This document shows positions 42,859-62,230 of a stretch of DNA of 64,000 nt, one piece after another. Numbering within the stretch: position 1 is the stretch's first letter; every line of letters starts with the position of its first letter. Position numbers and translations under genes: made by a program. The notes under the pieces were generated by a model. It was not told the DNA's origin. It did not search any database and saw only the letters and a list, made by a program, of their open reading frames with translations. Location of the stretch: positions 1 through 64,000 of the IMG/VR virus record IMGVR_UViG_3300027759_000045; one strand, 5' to 3'.

Positions 42859-43332
42859 ATGTCGCAACTTGCATGGATGTTTAGTTTAATTCCAGATTTT
42901 ATTTTTGTACTCATTGCCTGGGCCGCTGCTGTAGGCGGGGTTGGACTATTTTTAGCCAGCAAAGCAGTGCGTTGGATTCCCGGTATTGCACTGTACCGAA
43001 CACCTGCTGAGTTAGCAGGCGTTGTGTTGTTGGTCATTGGTGCCTGGATGCTGGGCGGGCAAGCTGCCGATGCACGTTGGCAAGCAAAAGTTGTAGAAGT
43101 TGAAGCAAAGTTAAAAATTGCCGAAGAACAATCTGTTGTTGCCAACACAGAAATAGAAACCAAAACCCGAGAAACAATCAAATACATTCGTGGTCGCACA
43201 GAGATTGTTAAACAATATGTTGACCGCGAAGTGGTCAAGTACGACACCAAGTTCATGCCAGGCGGCATTTGTGAAATACCTCGAGAATTTGTCAAGGCAC
43301 ACAATGATGCCGCAGAAGGACCTAAAAAATGA
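42859..43332 (+). CDS. Putative inner-membrane spanin (Rz-like)
   Basis: N-terminal TM helices, coiled coil, C-terminal Cys; lysis context. Confidence 0.6.
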   Translation: MSQLAWMFSLIPDFIFVLIAWAAAVGGVGLFLASKAVRWIPGIALYRTPAELAGVVLLVIGAWMLGGQAADARWQAKVVEVEAKLKIAEEQSVVANTEIETKTRETIKYIRGRTEIVKQYVDREVVKYDTKFMPGGICEIPREFVKAHNDAAEGPKK

Positions 43333-43901
43333 GAGCTAATGAATTTGTAACTGAAGAACCCAGAACAGCGGCCCCAAAGCCCGAAATAGTATCAGTACAG
43401 GACGATGGCAAAACGATCACAATTAAAGTACGCGGCCATGACGGGGCTGTGCGAGCAATTGCAAATTCGAACCCAGCGGTGTTACAACAACAGTTGAATC
43501 TCAAATACGGGCTAAGACTGCCACACAGCATTGCTAAAAAGTTTGCAGGAATGCCAGCTGCAATGGCCGAAGATCAAGCAGACAATCCCGACAGTTGGCA
43601 GTCACAGGCAGCAGATGCCGAACGTGATGAAGAAACTGCTAAGATGGCTGCGCAAGATGCTGAGGCAGGTGGATTGGCAGAAGAACAACTAGACGAAAAA
43701 AGTACTAGCCAAGCACAGTTCCGCACAATGGCAGCAGCCGCACACAATCCCAAGTTTGCCAAGAAAGTTGGCATCAGCCCGGATGTGGCTCGAGAATTCC
43801 ACGGTGCTGATCGTAAACAAAATTATAAATCATTGCCCCGGAAAGCCGCAGAAGACGCATCCTGGGGAATGGCACCCGAAAGTCGAGGCTACAAGAAATG
43901 A
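43329..43901 (+). CDS. Putative virion internal protein
   Basis: MRANEFVTE leader; QAQFRTMAAAAHNPKFAKKVGI module. Confidence 0.55.
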   Translation: MRANEFVTEEPRTAAPKPEIVSVQDDGKTITIKVRGHDGAVRAIANSNPAVLQQQLNLKYGLRLPHSIAKKFAGMPAAMAEDQADNPDSWQSQAADAERDEETAKMAAQDAEAGGLAEEQLDEKSTSQAQFRTMAAAAHNPKFAKKVGISPDVAREFHGADRKQNYKSLPRKAAEDASWGMAPESRGYKK

Positions 43902-44179
43902 TCAACAAACGTGTCGTAGCTAGTTTAGTCGTACTTGTGACACTTGCAGGATGCTCAACCGCAGTACCAGTTACTGCACGGTTTCCAGAACCTCCTGGGC
44001 TAAACTCTTTAGAACGTTGCCCCAACTTGGAAAAATTAAAAGATACACCTGTGCTGAGTGATGTTGCTAGAACAGTAACCATCAACTATGGCACCTACTA
44101 TGAGTGCGCCGTAAAAGCAGATGCTTGGCAACAGTGGTATCAGATACAAAAAAATATATTTGAAGGAGCCGTTAAATGA
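43898..44179 (+). CDS. Putative outer-membrane spanin lipoprotein (Rz1-like)
   Basis: Lipobox LAGC; Pro-rich; NY..YYEC. Confidence 0.7.
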   Translation: MINKRVVASLVVLVTLAGCSTAVPVTARFPEPPGLNSLERCPNLEKLKDTPVLSDVARTVTINYGTYYECAVKADAWQQWYQIQKNIFEGAVK

Positions 44180-44793
44180 GTAGCATACTAGCACTGGACC
44201 AACTAAAACAGATGGTCAAGAATCCCTACATTGATCATTGGCACGACGCACTGGATCAGTTGTTAGATGATTACGAAATCAATACACCACTGCGTGTGGC
44301 GCACTTTATTGCACAGTGCGCACACGAGTCGGGCAACTTTGTGTTCATTAAAGAAAACTTAAACTACAAGGCCGCAAGTTTGATGACGGTGTTTAAAAAG
44401 TATTTCCCTACACCGGACTTGGCACAACAATATGCCAACAAACCCGAGCGCATTGCCAACAGAGTATATGCTAATCGTATGGGCAATGGTGATGAAGCAT
44501 CTGGCGACGGATTCCGCTATTGTGGACGTGGACTTATTCAGTTGACCGGCAAAGACAACTACACATTCTTTGCCGGAAGTTTAAATATCAGTGTGGAAGA
44601 GGCCGCAGAATACTTGGCCACCTTTGAAGGTGCCGCACAGAGTGCCTGCTGGTACTGGGAACAAAACAAACTAAATCGCTTTGCTGACGCAGACGATACC
44701 AAGGGGCTCACACGAGCCATCAACGGTGGCTACATTGGTCTAGAAGATCGAATCCAGCATACTGAACACGCATTACATATACTAGGAGCATAA
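44176..44793 (+). CDS. Endolysin, glycoside hydrolase family 19
   Basis: FIAQCAHES, ENLNY, YANRMGNG, GRGLIQLTGK.NY, INGG..G..DR. Confidence 0.92.
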   Translation: MSSILALDQLKQMVKNPYIDHWHDALDQLLDDYEINTPLRVAHFIAQCAHESGNFVFIKENLNYKAASLMTVFKKYFPTPDLAQQYANKPERIANRVYANRMGNGDEASGDGFRYCGRGLIQLTGKDNYTFFAGSLNISVEEAAEYLATFEGAAQSACWYWEQNKLNRFADADDTKGLTRAINGGYIGLEDRIQHTEHALHILGA

Positions 44794-44795
44794 AT

Positions 44796-44915
44796 ATGTT
44801 AGAAACACTATTTTGGTTGGCATTAGGAGCATTTGTTGGATGGAATTTTCCGCAACCAGACTTTGCAAAACGCATACAGGCCCGCGTCATGGCCGCATTT
44901 CGAAAGGATCAATAA
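44796..44915 (+). CDS. Small membrane protein (39 aa; not in ORF track)
   Basis: MLETLFWLALGAFVGWNFPQP...; AGGAG SD. Confidence 0.6.
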   Translation: MLETLFWLALGAFVGWNFPQPDFAKRIQARVMAAFRKDQ

Positions 44916-44916
44916 A

Positions 44917-45858
44917 ATGACAAAGACAAATTTTTTAGCAACAATTATTTTGGCCTTGGCACCCGTGGTGTCCATGAGTCAAAGTCAAACACCAATTAAT
45001 ATCACAGCAGTTACTCCACAAGGCAGTCCTGCTCAGTTTACCAATTATAGTGGTCTGAATGCTACATTTACTTTTCAAACACAAAACACATTGAATAGTC
45101 CATTTTGTAATACCGGTGCAGGCGATATTTGTACCTTGCCAACTGCAACGGCCGGGGTGAATGCATATCCCATTGCCAACACTCGCTGGGGAACATATAA
45201 ACTTAATAACCCCAATGCAGGTTCATGTGCGCCTGGCATTATGTTTGGCGGTGCTCAATACTGCTTGCTAGAGTTTCACTTTCATGGACCTGCAGAACAC
45301 TGGGTCAACAACTCAGTAACTGATTTAGAAGTACACTTTGTCTATTTTAAACTGGCTGATTTTACAGGTCCTTATGGATTGTGTAATGCAGACAGTTTGT
45401 TGGTGTTGGGTCAGCGCATGGTTGGTAATGGCAATACAGCAAACGCAGCCTGGACCACGGTGTTCAATGCAATACCGGCTGCCAATGCCAGCGGCGCAAA
45501 TTCTGGACAGACCGTGAGTTTCAACATTGCAAGCATGATGGGCATGGCCAACTTTAACACAGCACCAAGCTATAGATACAGCGGTGGATTGACTGCACCA
45601 ATTTCAATTGGTACATTAGGCGCCAACAGTACTTGTGTAGCAACTACTAACCCTGCCAATGGTCGTCCATGGTGGGGCAATCCACAACGTCAACTGACTC
45701 AACAAGCATACCCACAAATTGTTTCTTGGGTGTTGTTTAGACAACCAATACAGTTGTCTGTAGCACAGGTAGCACAATTTAAAACTGTGTTCCCTGATGG
45801 CAATGCTCGTGCTGTACAACCACAAGGTTCTACTGTTTATTTTGCCAATCCAAATTGA
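44917..45858 (+). CDS. Secreted alpha-class carbonic anhydrase
   Basis: Signal peptide, QTPINI, EFHFH.PAEH, LEVHFV, YRYSGGLTAP, V.WVLF, NARAVQP. Confidence 0.85.
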   Translation: MTKTNFLATIILALAPVVSMSQSQTPINITAVTPQGSPAQFTNYSGLNATFTFQTQNTLNSPFCNTGAGDICTLPTATAGVNAYPIANTRWGTYKLNNPNAGSCAPGIMFGGAQYCLLEFHFHGPAEHWVNNSVTDLEVHFVYFKLADFTGPYGLCNADSLLVLGQRMVGNGNTANAAWTTVFNAIPAANASGANSGQTVSFNIASMMGMANFNTAPSYRYSGGLTAPISIGTLGANSTCVATTNPANGRPWWGNPQRQLTQQAYPQIVSWVLFRQPIQLSVAQVAQFKTVFPDGNARAVQPQGSTVYFANPN

Positions 45859-45878
45859 TATAAAAAAGAAAATTAAAA

Positions 45879-46415
45879 ATGATCGAAGAAAAGAAACCCT
45901 TATCACGCAGTGAACGTGAAGCTCAGATCAAAGACAAAGCCGGCCTGGTCATTGTGTTTATGGCCTTGTTCCTGGCAGCAAATACATATCTTGCCAATGG
46001 GTTTAGTAGCACAGCACAAACTAACCTGTTACAGGCCAGTAACACATATGGTTTTTATCAGAGCAAAAGTATCAAACAAACTCTTGCTGAAGGACAATTA
46101 GAAGAAGCTAAGAAGGGCACTGATAAAGCTCGCATTGAGAAACTGGAAGCCAAGATTGCTCGTTACGAAAGTGAACCGGCCACTGGCGAAGGCAAACGAG
46201 AACTGCTTGAAAAAGCACGGGCACAAGACGCCGCACGTGAAGAAGCCAGAGCACACAGTCCTTGGTTAACATTCTCCGGCATGTTGTTTCAACTGGCCAT
46301 TGTACTGTTAAGTGCTAGTATTTTGTCGGTGAACAACCGGATGTACCGGGCCAGTTTAGGTGTTGGTGCAGTTGGATTAGTGCTGATGGCCCAGGGCTAT
46401 TGGTTGTGGTTTTAA
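45879..46415 (+). CDS. DUF4337-like membrane protein
   Basis: FYQSKSIKQ, coiled coil, FQLAIVL.S. Confidence 0.65.
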   Translation: MIEEKKPLSRSEREAQIKDKAGLVIVFMALFLAANTYLANGFSSTAQTNLLQASNTYGFYQSKSIKQTLAEGQLEEAKKGTDKARIEKLEAKIARYESEPATGEGKRELLEKARAQDAAREEARAHSPWLTFSGMLFQLAIVLLSASILSVNNRMYRASLGVGAVGLVLMAQGYWLWF

Positions 46416-46430
46416 TAACAAGGAGTTGGC

Positions 46431-46994
46431 ATGACACAAAAAATAAGTGAGTCAGAAAAGAAAAAAGAAGATTGGATGAACTCTAAATGGCGTCCGGCCA
46501 TGGGTTGGTTGTACATGTTTGTATGTTTCTTTGATTTTGTACTTGCGCCCATCCTTTGGAGTCTAGTACAGGCCTTATACAAGGGCGGAATTAATTTGCA
46601 ATGGCAACCACTGACGCTACAAGGCGCTGGATTGTTTCATATTTCCATGGGTGCTGTGTTGGGTCTTGCCGCATATGGCAGAACACAAGAAAAACTAAAT
46701 GGAGCAAACAATGGCGGAATCAACTTACCGCCAAATGTCGGTACAACATATACGCCACCGGGAGCAGTCACGCAGGCCGGGCCCGGTGCGTTTGGTGCAC
46801 CAACAGCAACAACAGTTACCCAGTCCTGGGGAACAACACCCATTGGTAGCGGGTTTGGAGGTTCATCCTCCGGCTTTGGCGCAGTACCGCCAGCACCAGC
46901 CGTATTCGGCAACGACTTTGGGGCACCAGTGGGTGTGACCACAGGATTTGGCGGCAAGCCGGCGCCTGTAATTCCACCATTCCCAGAACGCTGA
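46431..46994 (+). CDS. Putative holin (3TM/GTA-holin-like) with G/P-rich tail
   Basis: KWRPAMGW.Y, GAVLG..AYGRTQEK. Confidence 0.65.
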   Translation: MTQKISESEKKKEDWMNSKWRPAMGWLYMFVCFFDFVLAPILWSLVQALYKGGINLQWQPLTLQGAGLFHISMGAVLGLAAYGRTQEKLNGANNGGINLPPNVGTTYTPPGAVTQAGPGAFGAPTATTVTQSWGTTPIGSGFGGSSSGFGAVPPAPAVFGNDFGAPVGVTTGFGGKPAPVIPPFPER

Positions 46995-47620
46995 TGCACA
47001 TACAACTAGGCCAACGTCACATACACATAGTGCCACAACAGCCAGGCCATTTAAGTGGCATGTATGATAATGTGTTTTGGGAAGTTGAACTAGTTGATGC
47101 TCCTGATTGTTCGAATGAATTACTTCGCACAGACATCTGGGTTGATAATACAACATCAGCTATCGGCCACCAACGAAAACAGTGTCACGCAGATTGCAAG
47201 TCAGATATGTTGAAAGAAATATTACAGGTGCCTAGCCAACAACGTGCAGAATTTCTTGGTGCTGCTGCTCAGGCAGATACGGATACAGGCAAGGCTTATT
47301 TTAGAAAGCTCTGGCACAGAGATCTTGATTCCTATGTCAATTCCACTCGTACCGTAACTGTTATAAATCATGATGCTCCGGGATTTGCAATGGGTACTCA
47401 TTGTGACAACAATCATATTATTCTACAGATGATTGTTAATTTAACTGACAACGATACTGGAACCGAACTGTTTGATATCATTTCACCAGACCCCTACTAC
47501 ACAATGACCGGACAACGTAACAAAGGCATTATGTTTCTCAACGGTGCAGGCACACTGCACAATATACGCAATATAAATAAAGACAGGTACACATTATACT
47601 CGGCTGTAATGATTGGATAA
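46994..47620 (+). CDS. 2OG-Fe(II) oxygenase-like protein
   Basis: HCD, GT, LH, RYT motifs. Confidence 0.6.
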   Translation: MHIQLGQRHIHIVPQQPGHLSGMYDNVFWEVELVDAPDCSNELLRTDIWVDNTTSAIGHQRKQCHADCKSDMLKEILQVPSQQRAEFLGAAAQADTDTGKAYFRKLWHRDLDSYVNSTRTVTVINHDAPGFAMGTHCDNNHIILQMIVNLTDNDTGTELFDIISPDPYYTMTGQRNKGIMFLNGAGTLHNIRNINKDRYTLYSAVMIG

Positions 47621-47637
47621 AATAAAGGAAAAACAAA

Positions 47638-47850
47638 ATGAAAAAAATCGTATTAGCATTAGCATTGGCCCTAGGTAGTCAATTTGCAGTGGCCGAAGAA
47701 CCAAAAGAAAAAACACGAGTTTGTGTTGATGTCAAAGACAAAGAAGGCCGGGATGTAATTGATCCAAAAACCAAAAAAGTCAAACAAAACTGCAAAGAAG
47801 TCAAAGTACACAAGAAGCTAGAAGGACATGAAGTTCCTGTTAAGAAGTAA
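47638..47850 (+). CDS. Small secreted protein
   Basis: Signal peptide, two Cys, Lys-rich. Confidence 0.65.
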   Translation: MKKIVLALALALGSQFAVAEEPKEKTRVCVDVKDKEGRDVIDPKTKKVKQNCKEVKVHKKLEGHEVPVKK

Positions 47851-47899
47851 TTGACCCGACCCAATAAGTCCTGTATAATTAACTGTACAGGACTTTTTT
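47851..47899 (+). promoter_or_regulatory. Sigma70 promoter embedded in a terminator-like hairpin
   Basis: TTGACC-17nt-TATAAT; aagtcctgta/tacaggactt stem plus T-run. Confidence 0.65.
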
Positions 47900-47900
47900 C

Positions 47901-48677
47901 ATGATAGATTACTATTCAACGTTGGGTGTGAGCCGGACTGCCACACAAGATGAAATCAAACGGGCTTTTCGTAAGTTGGCCAGCCAGCATCATCCAGACA
48001 AAGGCGGAGACACTGCTAAGTTCCAAGAAATACAAGCTGCCTATGATACCTTAGGTGACAGTGCCAAACGACAACAGTACGACAACCCAAGGCCGCAGTT
48101 TAACAACTTTAACCAGCCAGGCGGACAACAGTTTGATTTTGACACAATCTTTAATGTATTTGGTGCAAAATTTGGGCATCAACAAAGACAGCAACCAGCA
48201 GTTAGTCGTGCAAACTTAACTATTACGTTGGCAGATGTGGCAACAGGTGGCAAACGTACAATCGGCATTGGCGCATCCACAGTAGAAATAGAAATTCCCA
48301 TGGGTATCAACGATGGTGACAGTGTTCAGTACCGGGGCATTGGACCACACGGAAGTGATCTTGTGATAACTTTTAGAATTGCACCCAGTCCAACATGGGG
48401 CCGACAAGGATCAAACTTGTTAACCGAACATGAAGTAAACATTTGGGATCTTATACTAGGCAGTGAAACCACAGTTAAAGACCTGCTCGGCAACGAAATA
48501 ACTATCGTTGTGCCAAAAGACACACAGCCCGGTGCCAAGCTACGCTTACGTGGCAGAGGATTGCCCGGGCGAACCGGGCCTGGGGATATGATTGTGCAAA
48601 TACAAGCAGTCATTCCCAAAGACATACCACAGGATCTGTTGGACATGATACAACAAAAACGAACAAGTATCACTTGA
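47901..48677 (+). CDS. DnaJ/CbpA-like J-domain protein
   Basis: DYY..LGV, HPD, F.EI..AY..L; no Zn finger. Confidence 0.9.
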
Positions 48678-48731
48678 TATATAAAACAAATTGCTGTATA
48701 ATAATATATACACGAACTATAAAAGGAACCG

Positions 48732-51020
48732 ATGCAAAATAATCCTGAAATTGAAAAAATTGTCAACAATGCTGTGGCCATTGCAAAAGCTCACAATCAT
48801 GCTTATGTGATAACCGAACATGTACTGATGGCAATGATTCAACACGCACCATTTCGAGCATTGTTGGTGAAATATGGCACAGCCGTTGAACAGTTCGAAG
48901 GCGAACTAAGTGCATATATTCTAGCGCAGGTTAGTTTAATAACCAGCAAAGAAGATGTTACACCTCGCAAAACCAATGGCCTTGAGCGCATGTTTAATCG
49001 TGCGCTGACACAGGTACTGTTTACCGGACGCAGATCAATCACATTGCTGGATCTGTACCTGGCCATGATGGCAGAAAATAACAGCCATGCACATTACTTT
49101 TTGTTGAAGTATGGCGTTCACAAAACTGAATTTGCTGAGTTCTATCAGAAAAATCATGCCTCTGCCTCTAAAGAGTTGAGCAATGAAACTGCAAACGAAA
49201 TCCTGGATCAACACTGTACAAATCTAAGCAAACGAGCTGCCGACGGACAATTAGAACCCATGATCGGCCGGGCCGCAGAACTGGAAGAAATGATCACTGT
49301 GTTGGCTCGCAAGTTCAAGGCCAACGTGCTGATGGTGGGCGATCCTGGTGTGGGCAAAACTGCCATCATTGACGGACTAGCACAGGAGATCAACGCTGGC
49401 CGTGTTCCAGAGTTTCTTAAAGGTTCTGAAGTTTGGGGATTAGAGATTGGTTCGCTGTTGGCTGGCAGCAAATACCGTGGTGAGTTTGAAGAAAAGTTCA
49501 AAGACGTTATCTCTGCACTGGAAACTAAAAAGAACTGTGTGCTGTTTATCGACGAAGCGCACACCATGATGGGCGCAGGAACTTCGGGATCAAGCAGTTT
49601 AGACTTTGCCAACATGATCAAACCAGCAATTACCAAGGGCAACATCAAGGTAATTGCGAGTACCACATGGGAAGAATACTACGAGAGCTTTGAAAAAGAT
49701 CGTGCGCTGATGCGCAGATTCCACAGAGTCAATATTGGTGAGCCTGATTCAGCCACCACAGAGCAAATTCTAATTGGCATTAGCCCGCGTCTAGAAACAT
49801 TCCACAATGTACTGATTGACACAGAAGCAATGACAGCGGCTGTGGAATTGAGTGGACGCTACATTCATGATCGTAAGAATCCTGACAAGTCAATCGACCT
49901 GTTGGATGGCGCCTGTGCTGGAGAGCGTGTGAAAGACCTGGGCACAGTTACCATCAACCGTGACATGATCATGGCGCAACTCAGTCGTGTTACCGGAGTT
50001 CCTTTAGATAGATTGCAAAACGAACGCAGTACCAAGGTTACCGAGCTGGAAGGTAACATCAAGCAGTTCTTATACGGGCAAGACCAAGCCATTGACACTG
50101 TGCTAGAACGTATCTACATCAACTTCTCCGGCATTGGCAATGCTAAAAAGCCTGTGGCCAGTTTCTTGTTCCTGGGTCCAACCGGCACAGGTAAAACAGA
50201 ACTGGCCAAACTGCTGTCGCAAAATCTAGACATGCACCTGTTGAAATATGACATGAGTGAGTTCCAAGAGAAGCACAGCATTGCCAGTTTGATTGGTGCC
50301 CCTCCTGGATACGTGGGCTTTGATGACGGCAACGTGGGCGGCGGCAAGTTGATCAGCGACATTTCCAAGCACCCGTTCAGTATCCTGTTGTTTGACGAAA
50401 TTGAAAAGGCACACCCAGATGTGGTCAACATCATGTTGCAGATGCTGGATGAAGCCCGGATCACTGGCAGCAGTGGCAAGTCAGTGGATGTCAAGAACTG
50501 TATCATTATTATGACCAGTAACCTAGGTGCCAGAGACAATGAAAACAACAACATCGGCTTTGGTCAGTCGTTAGAAAAGACCGGCGAAGAAGACCGTGCT
50601 ATGAAAGAGTTCTTCAAGCCGGAACTGCGCAATCGCATTGACAAGGTGTGCAAATTCAACAAGTTAGACAAGCTAGCCATCAAGAAGATTGTGGTCAAGT
50701 TCACAGCAGAGTTACAAGAAACACTGTTGAACAAGAACATTCGTCTTACATTTGCTGAAGATGTGATCGACATGCTGGCAGACAAAGGCTACGATCCCAA
50801 GATGGGTGCTCGTCCATTGGGTCGCAAGATTGACGAACTGATCCGTGTACCACTTAGTAAGCGTATCTTGTTTGATCAAATTGCTGACTGTGCAATTCAT
50901 GCCAGTATGGTCAATGATACAGTGGAATTCACAACCACATCATTGCTGACTGTGCCTGGCCCAGGCGTCAACGACGAAGGATACATTGTAATTGATCAAT
51001 TTACACCCAACATTCAATAA
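48732..51020 (+). CDS. clpA: ClpA-like ATP-dependent chaperone
   Basis: Two AAA+ modules (GDPGVGKT, GPTGTGKT), KYRGEFEE, IGF loop, no ClpB middle domain. Confidence 0.88.
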   Translation: MQNNPEIEKIVNNAVAIAKAHNHAYVITEHVLMAMIQHAPFRALLVKYGTAVEQFEGELSAYILAQVSLITSKEDVTPRKTNGLERMFNRALTQVLFTGRRSITLLDLYLAMMAENNSHAHYFLLKYGVHKTEFAEFYQKNHASASKELSNETANEILDQHCTNLSKRAADGQLEPMIGRAAELEEMITVLARKFKANVLMVGDPGVGKTAIIDGLAQEINAGRVPEFLKGSEVWGLEIGSLLAGSKYRGEFEEKFKDVISALETKKNCVLFIDEAHTMMGAGTSGSSSLDFANMIKPAITKGNIKVIASTTWEEYYESFEKDRALMRRFHRVNIGEPDSATTEQILIGISPRLETFHNVLIDTEAMTAAVELSGRYIHDRKNPDKSIDLLDGACAGERVKDLGTVTINRDMIMAQLSRVTGVPLDRLQNERSTKVTELEGNIKQFLYGQDQAIDTVLERIYINFSGIGNAKKPVASFLFLGPTGTGKTELAKLLSQNLDMHLLKYDMSEFQEKHSIASLIGAPPGYVGFDDGNVGGGKLISDISKHPFSILLFDEIEKAHPDVVNIMLQMLDEARITGSSGKSVDVKNCIIIMTSNLGARDNENNNIGFGQSLEKTGEEDRAMKEFFKPELRNRIDKVCKFNKLDKLAIKKIVVKFTAELQETLLNKNIRLTFAEDVIDMLADKGYDPKMGARPLGRKIDELIRVPLSKRILFDQIADCAIHASMVNDTVEFTTTSLLTVPGPGVNDEGYIVIDQFTPNIQ

Positions 51021-51666
51021 TGTCAGTAAAGATCGGTTGTTTTACGATCAATACCGATACTGCATGACAGGTGAACTGCGTGAAGCAGGTTGTATGCGCA
51101 AACTTGATCATGCCGCAATTGATCATGTTGTGTCAGTGCGCAAAGAATGGACAGGTCGATTACATGATTACTATTCTTCAAATCGTGCTATCACAGATGA
51201 TGTAGTAAAAAATTTACACAACATGTGTGACGTGTTGATCAATACTAAACGGCAGCATAAATTAATAATAGAGCATGGCCAAATACGTGTGTACGCCAAT
51301 GAGCCCGAACTGTTCACAGAGATAATTGATCATGTACCAGGCCTTAAATATCCAGCATACACACAGGCTGTGATTGATCGCCCCAGAGACTCTATTCGTC
51401 TTAAAGAATCTGCATACTCACATCGCACATACCTGCGATCAGTTGTGGTAAACGATCAACAAAAACGATCAATTGGTCAACTACTAAGGAATCAAGAAGG
51501 TATCAGATTAAGTCCTGGATTAAAGTCCTGGGCATCAACTATCAGCTGGCGCGGCTGGACTGAATCGTATTACTTTGTGGATCACACGGATACAGGCTGG
51601 ATGACCATGTTGAGTTTGGTATATCCTGGCCTGATAAAAAACACAATTCAAATCATAAAAGCATAA
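50992..51666 (+). CDS. Hypothetical protein
   Basis: 224 aa ORF. Confidence 0.65.
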   Translation: MINLHPTFNNVSKDRLFYDQYRYCMTGELREAGCMRKLDHAAIDHVVSVRKEWTGRLHDYYSSNRAITDDVVKNLHNMCDVLINTKRQHKLIIEHGQIRVYANEPELFTEIIDHVPGLKYPAYTQAVIDRPRDSIRLKESAYSHRTYLRSVVVNDQQKRSIGQLLRNQEGIRLSPGLKSWASTISWRGWTESYYFVDHTDTGWMTMLSLVYPGLIKNTIQIIKA

Positions 51667-51676
51667 GTAATACACT

Positions 51677-51841: not shown

Positions 51842-51842
51842 C

Positions 51843-52226: not shown

Positions 52227-52235
52227 GGAATAATT

Positions 52236-52670: not shown

Positions 52671-52686
52671 GCATAAATATGCTATA

Positions 52687-53442
52687 ATGAATTATCTAGT
52701 AATTTACCCAGGACGTTTTCACCCATTCCACAAAGGTCACAAGGCCAGTTATGATTGGCTGAACAAACAGTTTAGCAACGACAGTGTTTTTATTGCCACC
52801 AGTGGTGTACAAGCACCTGTTACAAGTCCGTTCAGTTATTCCGACAAAGTAATGATGATGACCAAACTGGGCATTCCTGCTGGTCGCATTGTCAACGTAA
52901 AAAATCCATATCAAGCTGTTGAAATTACCAGTGCTGTTCCCGATGAAGAAAAGGCCAACACAGTATTGGTGTTTGCTGTGAGTGCTAAAGATGCAGAACG
53001 TTTTAATTTTGCTCCTAAAAAAGATGGCACCCCTGGGTATCTACAACCATTGCCTAAAAATAAAAAGTCAATAAAGCCCATGACCAAACATGGCTACGTT
53101 GTGATCACTCCCACTATCAACTTTCGAGTAAATGGCGTAGATGCCAACTCTGCATCCGAAATACGCAAAATGTATCTCAAAGGCAACGACCGTGACAAAG
53201 ATCAAGTGATTGCTGATTTATATGGTCAACCAGATTTGGCAATTCGCGCAGTGTTTGATAAGAAATTGGGCATTTCGGAACAGGCCCAAAACTATATTCG
53301 CGAAGCCAGGCAATTTGGCAATGTCAAGGTTGTGGAATGGCTGGAGAATGTGTTACAATTAGAAAAACAAGTAAACAGCGTCCACGCTGATTTCGCACAC
53401 ATCAACCCTGATTACATAGACGAAAAAACATATAATCGATAA
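52687..53442 (+). CDS. HxGH cytidyltransferase-like protein
   Basis: YPGRFHPFHKGH, SPF, SASEIR. Confidence 0.75.
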   Translation: MNYLVIYPGRFHPFHKGHKASYDWLNKQFSNDSVFIATSGVQAPVTSPFSYSDKVMMMTKLGIPAGRIVNVKNPYQAVEITSAVPDEEKANTVLVFAVSAKDAERFNFAPKKDGTPGYLQPLPKNKKSIKPMTKHGYVVITPTINFRVNGVDANSASEIRKMYLKGNDRDKDQVIADLYGQPDLAIRAVFDKKLGISEQAQNYIREARQFGNVKVVEWLENVLQLEKQVNSVHADFAHINPDYIDEKTYNR

Positions 53443-53459
53443 TACTTGGAGTACGGAGT

Positions 53460-54314: not shown

Positions 54315-54364
54315 CCTGGGTAGGCAACTGGTAGTAAATATCTGACTAACTTTTTAAGGAAAAC

Positions 54365-55267: not shown

Positions 55268-55290
55268 ACTGCTAGTTTAATTCCGATTCC

Positions 55291-55317
55291 AAAAGCCACT
55301 TTGCCCAGTGGCTTTTT
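55291..55317 (+). terminator. Rho-independent terminator
   Basis: aaaagccact-ttgccc-agtggcttttt. Confidence 0.85.
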
Positions 55318-55340
55318 CATTTGCGCTAAATATTACAATC

Positions 55341-58300
55341 ATGAATATTTCTGAACTAGATTCCTACAACCTTGCTGATGCTGTTAAATTTAATGAACAG
55401 TTGAACCCACGTATCTGGCAGGGCAATAAAATGCGCCCACAGGTGCGGGCCACGCTGTTAAAAATTGCTGAAGACTTTAAACAAAGTTTGGGGATTGGCG
55501 ATTTGAACGTCAAAGACATCACCTTGTCCGGCAGCAATGCTGGTTACACATATACTCCACATAGTGACATAGATCTACACCTGGTGGTGGACCTACCCGA
55601 AGCAGATGTGAGTGAAGTGTATCGCGAGTTGTTTGATGCTAAAAAGTTTCAGTACAACGAAACACACAATATCAAAATTGGTGGCTACGATGTAGAACTC
55701 TATGTGGAAAACGCCAACAAATCGGCAGTGAGTCAAGGCATATTCAGTGTGCTGAATAACGACTGGATCAACATTCCACTGAAAAAACGTTCTACAATAA
55801 ACGACACTGCGGTCAAGAGCAAGTACGATGTGATCAAGCATCGCATTGAATCAGCAGTGAAATCTGGCAGTCTAAAACGACTGACCAACACTGCTGCCAA
55901 GATTAAAAAGATGCGTCAAGCCGGACTTGATCAGCACGGTGAACTGGGTCCAGAAAACATTGCGTACAAGATGTTGCGTTCACAAGGTGTTATACAACAA
56001 CTGTATGATGCCAGAACCAAGGCCAAAGATCGAGCACTGAGTCTTAAAGAACGGTCTATTGAAATTGATAAACCATTTAAATTCACCTACGGATTCAAAG
56101 CCACAGAAGATGTTGGTGCTTCATGGGATGGAGTAAGTCCCACAACACAGATGTTCTTGAATGAAGAACCCAAGTCAGATGAAGATATACTCACAGACTT
56201 TGTGGAGTTTTGTGTTGCAGAACTAGAGATTGAACAGATGCCACGTGTTCGCCTGCGTAAAGATCCGCAGTGGCCTGTGCGGCACAAGACGTTTGGTCGC
56301 TACAACGACAATGAAAAAATGTTAGAAGTGGCCTGGGGTCAACGACACATCATGGATGTGTTGCGCACAGTGGCACATGAACTCACACACAAGCATCAAC
56401 ACGAACGTGATGGCAGTGATATGGGATCTGACGCAGGTGAAACTGGCAGTCCTTACGAAAACGAAGCCAATGCTCGTGCCGGTGTACTCATGCGTGACTA
56501 TGCCAAACTGCACCCGGAACATTTTGCCGCCGGCCAAACAGATGATTTAGCAGAAGCATCAGGATACATCCCCACAAAGAAGCAGGCAAAGGACCCACGC
56601 TTTAGCATGGCCTTGACTCGAGATGTACGTCCAGGTGCGGTGGGTAAGGAAGCAAACAAACTAGGACTAAAGACTGACAATCAAGGACATCCAGGATTGT
56701 TAATGACTGGTTTGGCCAATGCACTGCGTGAGTTTAAAGAAACTGGGCAGATGCCGCTGATATACGAAGATGAGTTGTTTGAAATCAACATGAGCACAGG
56801 TAGCTTACGTCGCGAAGCTGCCAAGACCGGCGCTATTGCTGGCATGGAATTTGAAATGATTGTGCCCAATGTGGAAGGTGGCGACGATGATGGCCAACAG
56901 GAACCTGATTATGAGTATGACGAAGGTGTTAGTAGTATCCAAGACGCATATGACTTCTTCTACGACGGTGATTACAACAGCCGAGGTGATGTTACTCGAC
57001 TGCGTGAGAAGATGCAAAATGAATATTACGAATGGCTAGGTGAGTCGTTTGATACTCGTTGGGACGGTGACGAGTCAGAGTTTGTGTACAACTACCTTAA
57101 AGAAAACGCCAGTGCAGATGAAATTGCAGAAATACTAAGCACAGAACCCGACGCAGACGGTGAATACCCAGAGCCTGATAAACAGGCATATCGCGATGCC
57201 ACAGAAAAAGTTGTCGAAGAAAGCTACGGCAACTACTGGTATGATGCAGCACGTGAAAGTGCGCAGGAAGATTTTAATCAGAATGCAGACCTAGAATCAG
57301 AATGGTTAGAAGATCGAGACTTGAACCGCATGTCAGACATTGAAAATGAATACAACATGAGTTGGCCGCACTGGCAGTCAATGGGCAATGGTGGCGAAGC
57401 CAGCATCGAAGATGTTGCCCAAGAGTTTGAAAATGCCATAGACCGTCCTGTTCAAGCCAGCGGTAACTATCACTCCGGCGGCGTGCGAAGACCCAGCCCA
57501 ACAGCACAGCACTATCTAGTAGAACCTGATGGCAGTTTAGAAGCCAATGACAGCGATGATGTAGGCCTAGAGTTTGTAAGTCCACCTTTGCCTATTGACG
57601 ATATATTAAGTGACTTGAACAAAGTCAAGGCCTGGGCCAAACAATACGGATGCTACACCAACGATTCAACAGGCCTACACATCAACATCTCAGTGCCGGA
57701 CTACAGTAGAGAAAACTTGGACTTTGTTAAACTAGCTCTGTTAATGGGCGACGAGTATGTGCTGGACAACTTTGGTCGTGCTGGCAATACCTACGCTAAA
57801 TCAGCAATGAAATTAGTACGCGATCAAGTGCGCACTAAACCCGACGAAGCTGAACGTTTGTTGGATAAAATGAAAGGCAACCTGGACAGTTTGGCAAGCA
57901 AGGCCATACACTCGGGCGTGACCAGCAAGTACACCAGTATCAACACCAAGGACGGACATATTGAATTCCGCTCACCCGGTGGTGACTGGTTAGATGACAA
58001 CTTTGACAAGATTGAAAACACATTATTGCGTTTTACAGTGGCCATGAGTGCGGCTCTAAATCCAGAAATGTATCGCGAAGAATACCTGAAGAAACTGTAC
58101 AAGTTGTTGACACAGGACAACAAGGGTTCTGACACCATCAAGTACTTCAGTGAATATGTAGCAGGCAAGATTCCTGCAGCCGCACTGCGTAGTTTTGTTA
58201 AGCAGGCACAGTTGGAACGCAAGTTGAAGAAAGATCCAACAGGCGGTGAAAAATATTGGTGGAGTGTTCGTAGTCCTGGCAATAGCAATGCTGGTATAGA

Positions 58301-59072
58301 AGTTGTTGCCTCATCTAAAGAAGAAGCAATTGAAAAAGCCATTGGTGGTTATCCAAGTTGGGCTAACTATCGAAGTTCGTTGGTTGCCAAGCCAATGCGT
58401 CCATATGAACAATCTGCAAAAACTGTTCGCTACGAAATCTACAACAAACAGACTGGCAACTCAGTAGAGGATGCCGATGGAATTACCAATGATGAAGAGG
58501 CATTGGTTCGTCTCAATGATTATATTGAACACGGTCCGCATAGCCTACAACGAGGCCAGGCCACTGCTATGTTTGGTATACGTACTACCGGTGGAGTTGG
58601 AATTGTTGATATAGACATGCCAATAGCCCAGGGTCGTGCTGCCACAAGCCCAACTGGACAGTGGAAAATGATTGACGGATTAAATCGTGAATTATATCGT
58701 TTCCGTCCTGCAGAAAACACAAGAACAAGAGCCAATTACTTGGCAAGAGTATGGGCAGAAACACATAACTTTGACGGTAACTATCAAGTTGATCCAGTGG
58801 AAGAAAACGATGTGGTGCCGCAACCGGACGTGATCCCGCTACAGCAACCAACACCCGTTCCAGGCAGTACCGCAGACCTAGCACAACGCCGAGCACAAGG
58901 TGGCGAGTTTACCGGTGCTTGGAAGATTGTAGATTCTGATGGTAATGAACTGCATAGATTTTCCGGCATAGGCAATCAACAGCGTGACGCTAATCGTGTG
59001 GCCACACAGTGGTTGACCGACAATGGCTACAGCTATGGCACAGATGTCACTGTGCTACCAATAGTGAGTTAA
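55341..59072 (+). CDS. Polyvalent protein: Pol-beta-type nucleotidyltransferase + zincin metallopeptidase + amidoligase (COOH-NH2 ligase) + C-terminal repeats
   Basis: GSNA..SDIDLH; AHELTH..Q..ENEANA; GMEFE, DGSL, LEFVSP, TGLHINIS, KY.SIN, IEFR. Confidence 0.75.
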   Translation: MNISELDSYNLADAVKFNEQLNPRIWQGNKMRPQVRATLLKIAEDFKQSLGIGDLNVKDITLSGSNAGYTYTPHSDIDLHLVVDLPEADVSEVYRELFDAKKFQYNETHNIKIGGYDVELYVENANKSAVSQGIFSVLNNDWINIPLKKRSTINDTAVKSKYDVIKHRIESAVKSGSLKRLTNTAAKIKKMRQAGLDQHGELGPENIAYKMLRSQGVIQQLYDARTKAKDRALSLKERSIEIDKPFKFTYGFKATEDVGASWDGVSPTTQMFLNEEPKSDEDILTDFVEFCVAELEIEQMPRVRLRKDPQWPVRHKTFGRYNDNEKMLEVAWGQRHIMDVLRTVAHELTHKHQHERDGSDMGSDAGETGSPYENEANARAGVLMRDYAKLHPEHFAAGQTDDLAEASGYIPTKKQAKDPRFSMALTRDVRPGAVGKEANKLGLKTDNQGHPGLLMTGLANALREFKETGQMPLIYEDELFEINMSTGSLRREAAKTGAIAGMEFEMIVPNVEGGDDDGQQEPDYEYDEGVSSIQDAYDFFYDGDYNSRGDVTRLREKMQNEYYEWLGESFDTRWDGDESEFVYNYLKENASADEIAEILSTEPDADGEYPEPDKQAYRDATEKVVEESYGNYWYDAARESAQEDFNQNADLESEWLEDRDLNRMSDIENEYNMSWPHWQSMGNGGEASIEDVAQEFENAIDRPVQASGNYHSGGVRRPSPTAQHYLVEPDGSLEANDSDDVGLEFVSPPLPIDDILSDLNKVKAWAKQYGCYTNDSTGLHINISVPDYSRENLDFVKLALLMGDEYVLDNFGRAGNTYAKSAMKLVRDQVRTKPDEAERLLDKMKGNLDSLASKAIHSGVTSKYTSINTKDGHIEFRSPGGDWLDDNFDKIENTLLRFTVAMSAALNPEMYREEYLKKLYKLLTQDNKGSDTIKYFSEYVAGKIPAAALRSFVKQAQLERKLKKDPTGGEKYWWSVRSPGNSNAGIEVVASSKEEAIEKAIGGYPSWANYRSSLVAKPMRPYEQSAKTVRYEIYNKQTGNSVEDADGITNDEEALVRLNDYIEHGPHSLQRGQATAMFGIRTTGGVGIVDIDMPIAQGRAATSPTGQWKMIDGLNRELYRFRPAENTRTRANYLARVWAETHNFDGNYQVDPVEENDVVPQPDVIPLQQPTPVPGSTADLAQRRAQGGEFTGAWKIVDSDGNELHRFSGIGNQQRDANRVATQWLTDNGYSYGTDVTVLPIVS

Positions 59073-59073
59073 C

Positions 59074-60060
59074 ATGCGAGCCAGTGAATTTTTAATCGAA
59101 TATAGAGATAGACTATTACAATATGTCAAGAGTCTGTTGCCCACTTGGCCTGAATATGTTCTCAAAGATTGGTTGGTGCCCAACAAAGGTGACTTTAGTA
59201 ATTTACCAGATACTGAACTTAAAAATGGTATAATGGAAAAATTAAAAGGACAAGGTCTTTCTCCGAGTACTAAATGGCAACTTGTACCCGATATGAAGTT
59301 TACAATGGACATGTTTGAGCCAATGACTACACAGCGATTGGTTGGTCGTGCAGGTGGCAAAAGTGATTTAGGCATGAAAATTCCAAAGGATGCCGAACGA
59401 CACGCTACACAAGCCGCCCTGGCACAACAGCAAGGCGGTGTGCGTAAAGAACCTGTGCTACTAATAAAAACAGCCAATGGATATGAACTATTAGAAGGTT
59501 GGCATAGAACAATACAGCACTTTGCTCGGTATCCTAATGGATATACAGGCCCTGCGTATGTGGCAGTGGCACAAGGTCAGCAAGGTGTGGCGGAAGGCTC
59601 GGAACATTACAATGGCATTGAAATCTCCATGGAAAAGGAAGATGATGAAATTATGGTAAAGGCAATAATGCCAGGCGGTCGCGAACTTGGACATGTATTA
59701 TTTGTACAAGAGGGTGATTACTTAATGCCACAAGATTTAGAAGTTGATGAACGCTATCAAGGCCAAGGCATTGCCGCCACAATGTACGACTATATAAAAA
59801 GCAAAGGATACAAGATACGCCGCAGTGGTCAACAAACAGATGCAGGTGCAGGCTTCTGGGACAAACATCGTCCTGAGCAAAACGTTTGGGAAAACTTTGC
59901 GGATGGCAAAAATCCTGGACGCAAAGGCTTGAGCAAGCGAGTGGGAATTCCTAAAAAAGCCACCTTGGGCAAACTGGAAAAGATTGCAAAGTCCAGCACA
60001 GGCGAACGCCGCAGGATGGCACAGTGGCAACTAAATATGAGACGAGGTAAGAAAAAATGA
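59074..60060 (+). CDS. Multi-module protein: ParB-like + GNAT acetyltransferase + basic tail
   Basis: EPVLL..LLEGWHR; V...YQGQGIA..MY, QT.AG..FW. Confidence 0.65.
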   Translation: MRASEFLIEYRDRLLQYVKSLLPTWPEYVLKDWLVPNKGDFSNLPDTELKNGIMEKLKGQGLSPSTKWQLVPDMKFTMDMFEPMTTQRLVGRAGGKSDLGMKIPKDAERHATQAALAQQQGGVRKEPVLLIKTANGYELLEGWHRTIQHFARYPNGYTGPAYVAVAQGQQGVAEGSEHYNGIEISMEKEDDEIMVKAIMPGGRELGHVLFVQEGDYLMPQDLEVDERYQGQGIAATMYDYIKSKGYKIRRSGQQTDAGAGFWDKHRPEQNVWENFADGKNPGRKGLSKRVGIPKKATLGKLEKIAKSSTGERRRMAQWQLNMRRGKKK

Positions 60061-60381
60061 GATCAAGTGAATTCGTATTTGAAAAGTGGAGCGAAAAATA
60101 CAAAAGCAGTATTAACTGTAGCCACCCTCGAGGCTTTTCACAAAAAGCACACTGTGCCGGTAAAAACAAACAGAATGAATCAGTTGAGATGGAAATGGTG
60201 TGCGAAGATTGTGGCATGTGTGAAACACATGGCAATGTAAATGAAATTAAAAAAGGTGCTAAAGACTCAAATGGCTATACCCGTTGCTGGCCTGGCAAAC
60301 ATGCTGAAGGCACCAAAAAGGGCAAGAATGGCGGACAAGTTCGCAACTGTGTGCCCAATGAATCGCAAGGTGTGGCGGAAG
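59580..60381 (+). repeat. 17-bp direct repeat GCAAGGTGTGGCGGAAG (59580-59596 and 60365-60381)
   Basis: Identical copies, both encoding QGVAE at module junctions. Confidence 0.8.
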
Positions 60382-60794
60382 AATTATCAAAAGAGTTTGA
60401 TCTTATTGAAAGTATCATCGAAGGTATTGCTGAGCACAATGGTGTAGATGCCGAAACAGTATGGGAGGACCTAGAAAGCCTGACTGAAGATGAACTGTAT
60501 GCGTTTGCTGTGACTTCGCAACTGAACGAAGACTGGCAAAAGGCCAACAAGCGAGACAAGACCGATGGCATGAGCCAAAAGGCTGTGAATGCTTATCGCA
60601 GAGAGAATCCCGGATCGAAACTAAAGACTGCTGTGACCACTAAACCTTCGAAGCTAAAGAAAGGCTCTAAAGCCTCCAAGCGCAGATCAAGCTATTGCTC
60701 ACGCAGCCGTGGACAAATGAAAATGCATAGTATCTCATGTGCCAAAACTCCAGACAAAGCCATCTGCAAAGCACGACGTCGTTGGAACTGCTGA
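60057..60794 (+). CDS. Putative virion internal multi-module protein
   Basis: MRSSEFVFE leader; SINCSHPRGFSQKAHC, CWPG..NCVP, YRRENPGSKL..SYC.RS modules. Confidence 0.6.
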   Translation: MRSSEFVFEKWSEKYKSSINCSHPRGFSQKAHCAGKNKQNESVEMEMVCEDCGMCETHGNVNEIKKGAKDSNGYTRCWPGKHAEGTKKGKNGGQVRNCVPNESQGVAEELSKEFDLIESIIEGIAEHNGVDAETVWEDLESLTEDELYAFAVTSQLNEDWQKANKRDKTDGMSQKAVNAYRRENPGSKLKTAVTTKPSKLKKGSKASKRRSSYCSRSRGQMKMHSISCAKTPDKAICKARRRWNC

Positions 60795-60982
60795 TGAAGG
60801 TCAAAGAAGTCGTTAAAAGTGCAAAGCAATGGACTGCCAAGGTGCGTGTTCAGAATCCTGGATATGTGGGCTGGGTCGATGCAGTGGTCTGGGCTCCTAA
60901 CACTCATGTGGCCAGACAAATGATCAAAGCACAGTACCGAATTGAAGATTGGCACGTGGGCTCAATCAAAGAACTGCGTTAA
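60794..60982 (+). CDS. Hypothetical protein
   Basis: TGATG coupling; MKVKEVV. Confidence 0.55.
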   Translation: MKVKEVVKSAKQWTAKVRVQNPGYVGWVDAVVWAPNTHVARQMIKAQYRIEDWHVGSIKELR

Positions 60983-61683
60983 CTACGTAAGCGAGCCAGT
61001 CCTACTAGTCTAAATACACCAAGCCACATCCATCCTGCATCAAATTCAAACCAACGACGACTCAGTCTAGGGTTAGCAGGATCCAGATGATGGTTATTAT
61101 GCAGGCATTCCCCACCAACAACAATATCCCAAGGCACAATGTTTCTGCTGTGATCTTTAGTTTCGCCATTTCTATATCCCCACCAATGTCCAATGCCGTT
61201 GATAACTCCGGCCGCCCACCAAGGTATCCATGCCATTTGTATACCCCAAATCAGCACTCCCCACACACCAAACAACGCAACATCGATCGCAAGCATTAAT
61301 AAGATGCCTAGTCTGCTGTGGCGAGTGTAAACGTTGCGTTCAATCCAGTCATCCGGTGTGCCTGCGCCATACTGTGCAACCATCTCTGCGTCTCGGCTGG
61401 CTGAGTGATACAGGCCTGCACCTTTAAACAATACACGCCCAATTCCGTATACGTGTGGGCTGTGCGGATCACCTTCTGCATCACTGAATCTGTGATGCTT
61501 GCGATGGATAGCTACCCATTGCTTTGTAACCATGCCTGTGGTGAGCCATAGCCAGGCTCGCATGAAGTGTTCCAGTACAGGAGTAAAAACGATACCGCGA
61601 TGTGCTTGGCCACGGTGTAGGTACAATGTAACACAGATTATGGTAATGTGTGTGACTATTAAGGTATAGATAAGTTCTGTCAT
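60979..61683 (-). CDS. Membrane fatty-acid (delta-9-type) desaturase
   Basis: His boxes HRGQAH, HRKHH, HNNHH; GDPHSP. Confidence 0.9.
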   Translation of the reverse strand: MTELIYTLIVTHITIICVTLYLHRGQAHRGIVFTPVLEHFMRAWLWLTTGMVTKQWVAIHRKHHRFSDAEGDPHSPHVYGIGRVLFKGAGLYHSASRDAEMVAQYGAGTPDDWIERNVYTRHSRLGILLMLAIDVALFGVWGVLIWGIQMAWIPWWAAGVINGIGHWWGYRNGETKDHSRNIVPWDIVVGGECLHNNHHLDPANPRLSRRWFEFDAGWMWLGVFRLVGLARLRS

Positions 61684-61751
61684 AGTGTATTTAAGTAAAA
61701 CTATTGCCAAATTGCTAATTTAACTATACAGTTAACGGCACTAAATACAGC

Positions 61752-62033
61752 ATGAAACAGTTTATTCGTGTGCTATGTGACGTTGATTGTGCTTGGGCAG
61801 GTACTGAGCCAGTGTATCGCGTTTATGTTGATGACGAATTATTTGCTGAAAGAACCTGGCGCTGGCAAGATGTGTATCTAGAAGAAATGATACAGATCGA
61901 AGCAGAGCCGGGAGAATATGTAATCAGTTATGAACTTGTTGATTCTCCCGGTGCCACGCTACGTGTGTCAAACATGCGTGTGGATTATGGTCCCGGAAGA
62001 ATTAAAGGAAATCTACTAAAGATACTCACATGA
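61752..62033 (+). CDS. Hypothetical late protein
   Basis: YRVYVDDELFAERTW; TAAATA-4nt-ATG. Confidence 0.65.
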   Translation: MKQFIRVLCDVDCAWAGTEPVYRVYVDDELFAERTWRWQDVYLEEMIQIEAEPGEYVISYELVDSPGATLRVSNMRVDYGPGRIKGNLLKILT

Positions 62034-62230
62034 GAGCTCAGGAATTTATCAAAGAAAATGCGTCAGTTGGTGCCACCAGTTCCGGCAGCGTTGCCACAGT
62101 GGCCATGCCCATGGGTGGCATGCAGTCAAGAAATCCCGATAGTTTCTTTTCTGGTAAATATACAAATGACCCTTTTCCCAACACACCGAAAAGTATGAGA
62201 AAGAAAGCAAGGAAAACAAATGTTAAGTGA
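62030..62230 (+). CDS. Small putative virion protein
   Basis: MRAQEFIKE leader; GATSSGSVA. Confidence 0.55.
   Translation: MRAQEFIKENASVGATSSGSVATVAMPMGGMQSRNPDSFFSGKYTNDPFPNTPKSMRKKARKTNVK

Follow-up and report, generated by a model that had tools for sequence, protein, structure and literature searches.

The DNA analysed here, which we call the window, is the first 64 kb (positions 1-64,000) of the 346,856-bp IMG/VR record IMGVR_UViG_3300027759_000045. Several of its genes encode proteins that begin with the same nine-residue peptide, which we examine as a candidate capsid targeting sequence (CTS) of the type known from phage T4. When the window was translated in six frames, we found four occurrences of MR..EF..E, each of which forms the first nine residues of a plus-strand open reading frame (ORF), and zero further occurrences of R..EF..E without the Met. 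The original prediction had placed these leaders at 43329, 59074, 60057 and 62030, on otherwise unrelated proteins. Both the coordinates and the N-terminal position are correct, and the bodies that follow the leaders show no similarity to each other beyond about residue 9. The back-translated leader pattern has four matches in the window versus 0.02 expected from dinucleotide-preserving shuffles, and 0 of 100 shuffles reached four. In an alignment of the four sites with their 60-base flanks, conservation is confined to the nine codons.

We refer to leaders of this form as class 1. The first tagged gene (43329..43901, plus strand, as are all genes in this and the next paragraph) encodes a 190-residue protein with the leader MRANEFVTE (43329-43355; 26.8 bits in the profile scan below). 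Its body contains a short motif common to phage "virion structural protein" PHROGs, and the gene lies between spanin-like genes and a GH19 lysozyme. The other three are found together in an island. The gene at 59074..60060 encodes 328 residues, consisting of the leader MRASEFLIE (59074-59100; 27.2 bits), a ParB_N-like module, a GQQGVAE/G linker, a GNAT module and a Lys/Arg tail. The GVAE of this linker (59584..59595) is a predicted exposed protease site, V-A-E/G; in an AlphaFold model of the protein, linker residues 168-174 have a predicted local distance difference test score (pLDDT) of <50 and are modelled as disordered. A fold search with this protein identified only its GNAT module, and a sequence search of the PDB returned no match. 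The next gene (60057..60794) encodes 245 residues, with the leader MRSSEFVFE (60057-60083; 19.1 bits), a Cys-rich module, the linker QGVAE/ELSKEFDLIE/ (GVAE at 60369-60380) and a DUF6321 module. The last (62030..62230) encodes a 66-residue protein with a mature isoelectric point (pI) of 10.7, in which the leader MRAQEFIKE (62030-62056; 26.4 bits) is followed by NASVGATSSGSVAT.

Several other genes lie beside or among these. Directly upstream lies a gene for an untagged, polyvalent-type protein of 1243 residues (55341..59072) that contains NTP_transf_2, IrrE/zincin-like (Peptidase_M78-like) and Amidoligase_2 domains. A 62-residue protein (60794..60982) begins with MKVKEVVKS, a decayed form of the tag; its orthologs start with the full tag MRSKEFITE, with MRAKEI[IV]RG or with MKAKEIISG. 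A 232-residue acidic protein (62662..63360) has an internal VVGVAE/D linker (63073-63084) and an N-terminal ...LALIE/S, and is possibly a further protease substrate. In the window, GVAE linkers are present in three island proteins. The mature tagged products are mostly basic (pI 8.8-10.7) and have Lys/Arg tails.

To define the leader across the whole genome, we derived a position-specific profile from a set of 89 related leaders and applied it to all 12,106 candidate ORF starts. Six leaders scored 19-27 bits and the best other start 5.8, a gap that makes the leader family discrete. A genome-wide motif scan, which had been suggested as a check on the original prediction, gave two members outside the window, exact matches at 247028 (MRAHEFLIE) and 247396 (MRAREFLRE). 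One of two weaker variants named earlier, MNISEL at 55341, did not hold up: the MNISELDSYNL... start of the 1243-residue protein has no profile score and no hydrophobic-x-Glu, and because it is kept for more than 20 residues among homologs, we regard it as the start of a domain and rejected it as a leader.

The other variant, MNLNDLYE (63360-63383), was well chosen. It opens a 920-residue protein whose gene (63360..64000, plus strand) extends past the end of the window, and it belongs to a second, separately enriched class of eight-residue leaders. Class-2 leaders have the form M-x-[IL]-x-[DE]-L-[FY]-E and stand at the start of 16 unique ORFs from related loci, a good number of which are 400-900 residues long; without the Met, the motif occurs 32 times in six frames of 2 Mb.

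We then asked on which molecule selection acts. The class-1 consensus is MRAxEF[ILV]xE. Among 89 unique leaders from related contigs, position 3 is Ala in 78, with GCA, GCT and GCC all common, position 7 is I, L or V in 87, encoded by at least eight codons, and Glu9 is invariant. Both codons are used for each of Glu and Phe, Arg is encoded by AGA and CGA, and some orthologs begin with GTG. Information content drops to background directly outside the nine codons. We therefore rejected a DNA-level repeat or regulatory element, since the flanks are unconserved and synonymous variation is free. Selection acts on the leader peptide rather than on the DNA.

If the leader is a portable signal, it should be found on many different proteins. 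We assembled about 160 related IMG/VR loci (2.06 Mb), found with two tagged proteins as queries. All 128 matches to M[RK]..EF..E in these loci open ORFs of at least 40 residues, and the motif without the Met occurs 34 times in six frames of the 2 Mb. The 89 unique tagged proteins of this set have bodies (residue 13 to the end) that fall into 17 families by blastp clustering. A second set, selected across the collection by the leader DNA pattern alone, comprises at least 120 stretches, from contigs as long as 525 kb. It contains at least 184 tagged ORFs, at least 173 of them unique, with at least 32 body families by the same clustering, and the tagged genes often occur in runs of three to five. 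A reversed control pattern had zero matches on five large contigs of this set. In an independent sample of 120 homologs taken from a database of 5.8 billion proteins, 72 start with the leader. Bodies are also found without it: the DUF6321 module of the 245-residue protein forms the C-terminus of larger untagged proteins beside the terminase in T4-like cyanophages. Within the single ortholog group represented by 60794-60982, the N-terminus varies from a full MRSKEFITE to the decayed MRAKEIIRG and MKVKEVVKS. Because loss of the Glu in T4 blocks processing and not targeting, the Glu-less forms could, by analogy, be packaged uncleaved; alternatively, the tag may be decaying.

A targeting sequence requires a head-assembly machinery to act on it. 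The genome is that of a 347-kb freshwater jumbo phage with direct terminal repeats, which occurs in freshwater and lake metagenomes of several independent studies. Its head module is in T4 order: portal, a 73-residue small core protein, a 255-residue acidic core protein, protease, a 366-residue coiled-coil scaffold and the major capsid protein (MCP). The protease (genome 204405-205052) is a Peptidase_S77 prohead protease (87 bits) that is 35% identical to T4 gp21 (E 9e-20). In 35 homologs there is no variation in its HP and GVSSRG motifs, which align with those of gp21 and in which we place the catalytic His and Ser. The MCP (genome 206174-207370) belongs to the gp23 family (325 bits), and by this protein the nearest cultured phages, at 62-67% identity, are Vibrio phage 2.275.O, Pseudomonas PA5oct, Sinorhizobium Phosso and the Serratia BF group. 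The tagged island lies about 140 kb from the head module. Leaders and protease occur together elsewhere as well: a near-complete relative of 316 kb (G001) carries the S77 protease and four leaders, G002 also carries both, and all five large leader-selected contigs (191-525 kb) have an S77 protease above cutoff, with 2-8 leaders per contig.

The core proteins in this genome start with short peptides (MILNELYQRE, MTSKFEQLIE and MARYLQE) whose last residues are hydrophobic-x-Glu, and the same is true of T4 gp67, gp21, gp22 and gp24. The 42 N-terminal residues of the capsid protein contain LLE7, LLE20, ILE34 and LKE42, and the mature N-terminus of T4 gp23 aligns close to ILE34/N. The 66-residue basic protein of the island, which is found clade-wide, profile-aligns with this N-terminus (hhalign probability 90%, E 1.4e-6). 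When its sequence, NASVGATSSGSVAT, is compared with the capsid N-terminal arm, NASAGSTAAGNIAT, Glu9 falls on Glu42 of the capsid protein (LKE42/N), so that both would mature to NAS.G.T.... The 66-residue protein may be a partial duplication of the MCP N-terminus together with its cleavage site, or may occupy the binding site of the MCP arm in the shell.

That unrelated internal proteins of T-even phages share just an N-terminal packaging leader is textbook knowledge (PMC9026906, PMC12373910, PMC3012670). In the T4 record NC_000866, IPII and IPIII start with MKTYQEFIAE/A... and IPI with MKTFKEFTS.... For packaging, ten N-terminal residues of IPIII are enough; within the T4 CTS, targeting depends on residues 4 and 7 and processing on residues 8 and 10, and a change to Asp at position 10 prevents processing but leaves targeting intact (PMC9026906). 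When the sequences were aligned from the cleavage end, we found that the leader keeps E6, F7, I8 and E10 of T4, with Y4 replaced by Ala. Three of the four mutationally critical T4 positions are therefore conserved (F6, [ILV]7 and E9 in the numbering used here), and some relatives have the exact sequence MRAQEFIAE.

If a gp21-like protease removes the leader, the same specificity might also be seen where modules meet inside larger proteins. The ParB_N-like module is found either directly behind a leader or inside larger proteins. In its non-leader contexts, a Glu at position -1 and a hydrophobic residue at position -3 are present in 21 of 21 cases (16 distinct hexamers), compared to background frequencies of 5% and 25%, respectively. 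Internal copies of the body of the 245-residue protein have the Glu in nine of nine cases and the hydrophobic residue in eight of nine. For the amidoligase module, all 16 distinct upstream contexts have both; because all of them end in hydrophobic-x-Glu, we predict an internal processing site, ELFE481/I482 (56772..56783, plus strand), at the start of this module in the 1243-residue protein. In two relatives (L021 and L101), the amidoligase module is a separate gene behind MRAIEFIIE/TQVLDE/, and double-site linkers of the QGVAE/GSEQINE/ type recur before internal modules in the 120-homolog sample. This boundary rule is the strongest support, of an indirect kind, for the cleavage that we predict.

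The bodies themselves suggest what kind of cargo might be carried. A 200-residue tagged protein found elsewhere consists of a leader and ADPrib_exo_Tox (48 bits), the architecture of a minimal T4 Alt. Other leader-selected cargo includes an ART-PolyVal protein, a 704-residue protein with LysM and phage-lysozyme domains, and amidoligase, DUF6267 and DUF6886 proteins; homologs add NUDIX, deaminase and cytidylyltransferase modules. Two or more effector domains, as in polyvalent proteins, were found in both the 1243-residue protein (NTP_transf_2, Peptidase_M78-like and Amidoligase_2) and the 328-residue protein (ParB_N-like and GNAT). The most abundant tagged family, of 128 residues, accounts for 81 of 173 among the matches listed and includes this genome's own members 247028 and 247396. 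It has no Pfam, PHROG or atlas match; its model (pLDDT 79) is a mostly extended chain whose sole structural match is an uncharacterised phage protein. The members of this family (genome 247028-247782) have an invariant S-x-E about 18 residues before their end and a conserved C-terminal SPVKxFKGYPR. A similar C-terminus, RGYKK, is found in the 43329 protein. By analogy with T4 Alt, which is processed at its C-terminus, such a C-terminal feature may be where a protease acts, or may serve as a second signal.

Other features lie in and around the tagged genes. The region 42859-44793 resembles a lysis cassette, with a 157-residue membrane protein, the tagged 43329 gene, a 93-residue lipoprotein-like ORF (LAGCS, lipobox-like) and a GH19-type lysozyme; in the relative L101, the GH19-like protein itself bears the leader, followed by a twin-arginine-like RRGFLGALGAG segment. 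The island includes a fatty-acid desaturase gene in its middle (60979-61710, minus strand) and a Dps/ferritin-like DNA-binding protein without a leader (62220-62660). A DnaJ-like protein (258 residues) and a ClpA/B-type AAA+ ATPase (762 residues) are encoded at 47901-51020, 8-10 kb upstream of the cargo island, and the annotation of the relative PA5oct lists a ClpP subunit among the proteins that mass spectrometry (MS) detected in virions. A link between Clp/DnaJ and cargo handling is conceivable. An NMNAT-like nucleotidyltransferase in the window (52687-53442) has no leader (MNYLVIYPGRFHPF); in a relative (L055:7248), the same domain stands behind the class-2 leader MFITDLFE/AKNTPVIVTYPGRFQPFH, and in other homologs it is fused upstream of a ParB_N module. 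The same enzyme can therefore be cytoplasmic or tagged.

Leader-like N-termini also appear beyond the two classes. At genome 244274-244882, a 202-residue protein starts with MKHFKEYLAE/N, a ten-residue peptide that resembles the T4 MKTFKEF/MKTYQEFIAE more than it does the local MRA consensus. The tagged paralogs 247028 and 247396 begin 2.7 kb downstream of this gene, and this neighbourhood may therefore be a second cargo island. In the T4-like cyanophage Synechococcus phage DSL-LC02 (L205:2925-3245), a gene beside a DUF6321 protein starts with MKSFNQFLSE, resembling the T4 CTS, which hints that the T-even literature may understate how widespread CTS-like leaders are among T4-superfamily phages. 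On the minus strand, at genome about 157-176 kb, there are two giant ORFs of 4852 and 3774 residues.

Altogether, that the leader is a portable peptide signal is nearly certain. We further consider it probable that MRAxEF[ILV]xE is a T4-type CTS, with binding to the core, cleavage, retention in the virion and ejection as inferred steps. The leader would be a portable N-terminal propeptide that attaches each new protein to the scaffolding core during prohead assembly, after which the Peptidase_S77 prohead protease would cut behind the terminal Glu9. The same protease would also cut the hydrophobic-x-Glu linkers (e.g. GVAE/G) between the modules of multi-domain cargo. Once matured, the mostly basic modules would be retained in the head alongside the DNA, and on infection they would pass into the host and act there as early effectors. 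These steps are not equally secure. Cleavage after the Glu by the prohead protease is likely, it is only a little less likely that the leader directs encapsidation, and ejection of the cargo into the host is slightly more likely than not. If it is cut after Glu9, the ParB_N-like module (59101 onward, and its homologs) would start with YRDR... or LRDR.... Tyr and Leu are destabilising residues under the bacterial N-end rule, and a module injected in this form might therefore not persist long in the host. The original prediction had proposed a portable address tag like the T4 CTS. The shared core, the peptide-level selection, the at least 32 body families and the S77 and gp23 machinery speak for it, and this interpretation is supported in that each of its computational predictions that we tested came out positive.

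A number of observations weigh against this interpretation. In the AlphaFold model of the 328-residue protein, the leader is continuous with the first helix of the body (residues 3-21), so the hydrophobic-x-Glu before the ParB_N-like module could in part reflect the fold. The co-occurrence of leaders and S77 proteases is supportive, but it is confounded by phylogeny, because it would be expected of any lineage-specific tag. The exact leader is absent from PA5oct, Vibrio phage 2.275.O and Serratia BF, which have the same head module, and has one match in Phosso. Relaxed scans of the cultured relatives yielded just a few loose N-termini, those of PA5oct being without an annotation from electrospray ionisation tandem mass spectrometry (ESI-MS/MS), and we found no homologs of the 328-, 128- and 66-residue tagged proteins in cultured phages. 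Moraphage belongs to a different lineage (PMC12619734). We detected no sequence similarity between the scaffold and T4 gp22, which is presumed to be the receptor for the CTS. Lastly, the T4 late promoter TATAAATA, an uninformative proxy for late expression, occurs 5 times on the plus strand against about 15 expected and is not enriched.

The alternative that survives best, unlikely as we judge it, is that the tag is a genuine prohead-core propeptide on proteins that are assembly or scaffold parts, degraded and expelled at maturation rather than delivered. T4 gp22, gp67 and gp68 also open with short hydrophobic-x-Glu peptides and are destroyed by gp21, and the tagged proteins here contain up to 10 further internal hydrophobic-x-Glu motifs each. 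The resemblance of the 66-residue protein to the capsid N-terminal arm fits this alternative as well, as does the mostly extended chain of the abundant 128-residue family, which has no enzyme fold. It does not readily explain, however, why many of the bodies are enzymes without a conceivable scaffold role (ADP-ribosyltransferase, GNAT, lysozyme, amidoligase, ParB_N). The tagged proteins also turn over fast between relatives, like the T-even ip genes, and positional homologs of the T4 core genes are already present in the genome without them.

We think it very unlikely that the leader addresses a different machine, either as a tag or degron for the phage ClpA/B-like unfoldase (48732-51020) or host AAA+ proteases, or as an export signal. 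The 762-residue Clp-type ATPase and DnaJ-like gene 8-10 kb upstream of the island could be cited in favour of a degron, and the leader in front of a twin-arginine-like signal on the GH19 lysozyme of L101 in favour of export. Yet, in contrast to Sec or Tat signals, the leader is acidic (net charge -1) and lacks a hydrophobic core. The motif at its centre agrees with the T4 CTS and is not known to match the ClpX or ClpA N-motifs, and the conserved terminal Glu, with an identical rule at internal boundaries, fits an endoprotease site rather than a degron.

Equally improbable, in our estimate, is that the leader is no portable tag but the N-terminal helix of one domain family, spread by gene duplication. 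Two observations point that way: the leader is modelled within helix 3-21 of the ParB_N-like module, and 247028 and 247396 are paralogs. Against it, from 17 to at least 32 body families have no detectable similarity after residue 12, the same bodies occur leaderless in cyanophages and as internal modules, and the leader is gained, decays and is lost within one ortholog group. Finally, it is scarcely credible that the conserved element works as nucleic acid, as a translation-initiation enhancer or an mRNA/DNA recombination motif, with the peptide incidental: the first codons are A-rich (ATG AGA GCn) and can favour initiation, but Ala3, [ILV]7, Glu and Phe are retained with free variation at the third codon position, Arg is encoded in two ways, some orthologs are GTG-started, and neither upstream nor downstream sequence is conserved.

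Returning to the T4-type CTS, such a leader matters because the proteins that enter a cell with phage DNA are hard to establish and are known for a handful of model phages. T4 Ip1-3 and Alt, and Dar of phage P1, are front-line factors for counter-defence and host takeover. If the leader works as in T4, a nine-residue motif and a linker rule flag dozens of candidate injected effector families in uncultured phages, among them ADP-ribosyltransferases, acetyltransferases, ParB-like proteins, amidoligases, lysozymes and many of unknown function. The CTS mechanism, so far documented for T-even phages only, would then be conserved across a deep branch of the T4 superfamily, and further short tags would become available with which large capsids could be loaded with foreign proteins. 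We regard as evenly poised a broader idea: that the T4 CTS core is ancient, and that freshwater jumbo phages of a large, abundant and uncultured lineage have turned it into a general means of delivery by "tag-and-cut". Under "tag-and-cut", any effector module could be loaded either by a nine-residue leader in front of it or by being spliced into a tagged polyprotein via hydrophobic-x-Glu linkers, at which the prohead protease would separate the parts. If this is true, T-even internal proteins and Aravind's polyvalent proteins would be unified, and injected effectors would be predictable from metagenome sequence alone. In the literature, of which our coverage was incomplete, no leader of this kind turned up outside the T-even group, and none was described together with cleavable-linker polyproteins. 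What would be new here is that a distant jumbo lineage uses a mechanism and core motif known from T4, with multi-module, polyvalent-type cargo and a second leader class.

How does this putative system compare to those already known? Encapsulin cargo-loading peptides are also short and portable, and suffice to load unrelated cargo into an HK97-fold shell. Unlike the leader described here, they are C-terminal and are not removed by a protease, and there is no scaffold core and no ejection of the cargo.

The inner-body and ejection proteins of phiKZ, 201phi2-1 and SPN3US (PMC5694885) are a closer parallel: these are jumbo phages as well, with a gp21-related protease that cuts head and ejection proteins after the Glu of x-x-E. 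It has been proposed that the propeptides direct these proteins to the prohead, and some of the cleavage sites are redundant (PMC5694885). These propeptides are, however, mostly longer than 100 residues and protein-specific and end in S/A/G-x-E, in contrast to a nine-residue portable tag ending in hydrophobic-x-E.

Iyer et al. 2017 (PMC5512222) predicted that polyvalent proteins are delivered in the capsid and attributed their processing to zincin peptidases embedded in them. The cargo described here resembles them in its repertoire of ParB_N, GNAT, ART-PolyVal, Pol-beta NTase, zincin-like peptidase and amidoligase domains, in its extensive shuffling and in its predicted role as early-invasion effectors after delivery with the DNA. 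The two differ in that polyvalent proteins were proposed to be processed by zincins and to be linked with the head by fusion to MuF or portal proteins, whereas a T4-type leader and hydrophobic-x-Glu linkers would serve here. In addition, many of the modules here are single-module tagged genes, unlike those of polyvalent proteins. If our interpretation is correct, it is the prohead protease rather than an embedded zincin peptidase that resolves polyvalent-type proteins in this lineage.

The closest comparison is with the internal proteins of T4 itself. The leader here has nine residues and starts with MRA, rather than ten starting with MKTY, and the targeting residue Tyr4 is replaced by Ala. 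Its host is a 347-kb freshwater jumbo phage whose protease is just 35% identical to that of T4, whose scaffold is not recognisably gp22, and in which a second, eight-residue leader class coexists with the first. Also unlike T4, much of the cargo is large and multi-module, with putative cleavable linkers inside. The CTS of the T4 and T-even internal proteins (IPI, IPII, IPIII and Alt) was reportedly described by Mullaney and Black in 1996. As in that CTS, the leader here is an N-terminal peptide of about ten residues that is the sole similarity between unrelated proteins and has an xEF-hydrophobic-x-E core. In both cases there is a gp21-type hydrophobic-x-Glu end, an S77 protease and a gp23 capsid, and the cargo in this genome and its relatives, like the T4 internal proteins, is basic, turns over rapidly, includes an ADP-ribosyltransferase and is encoded by tagged genes in islands.

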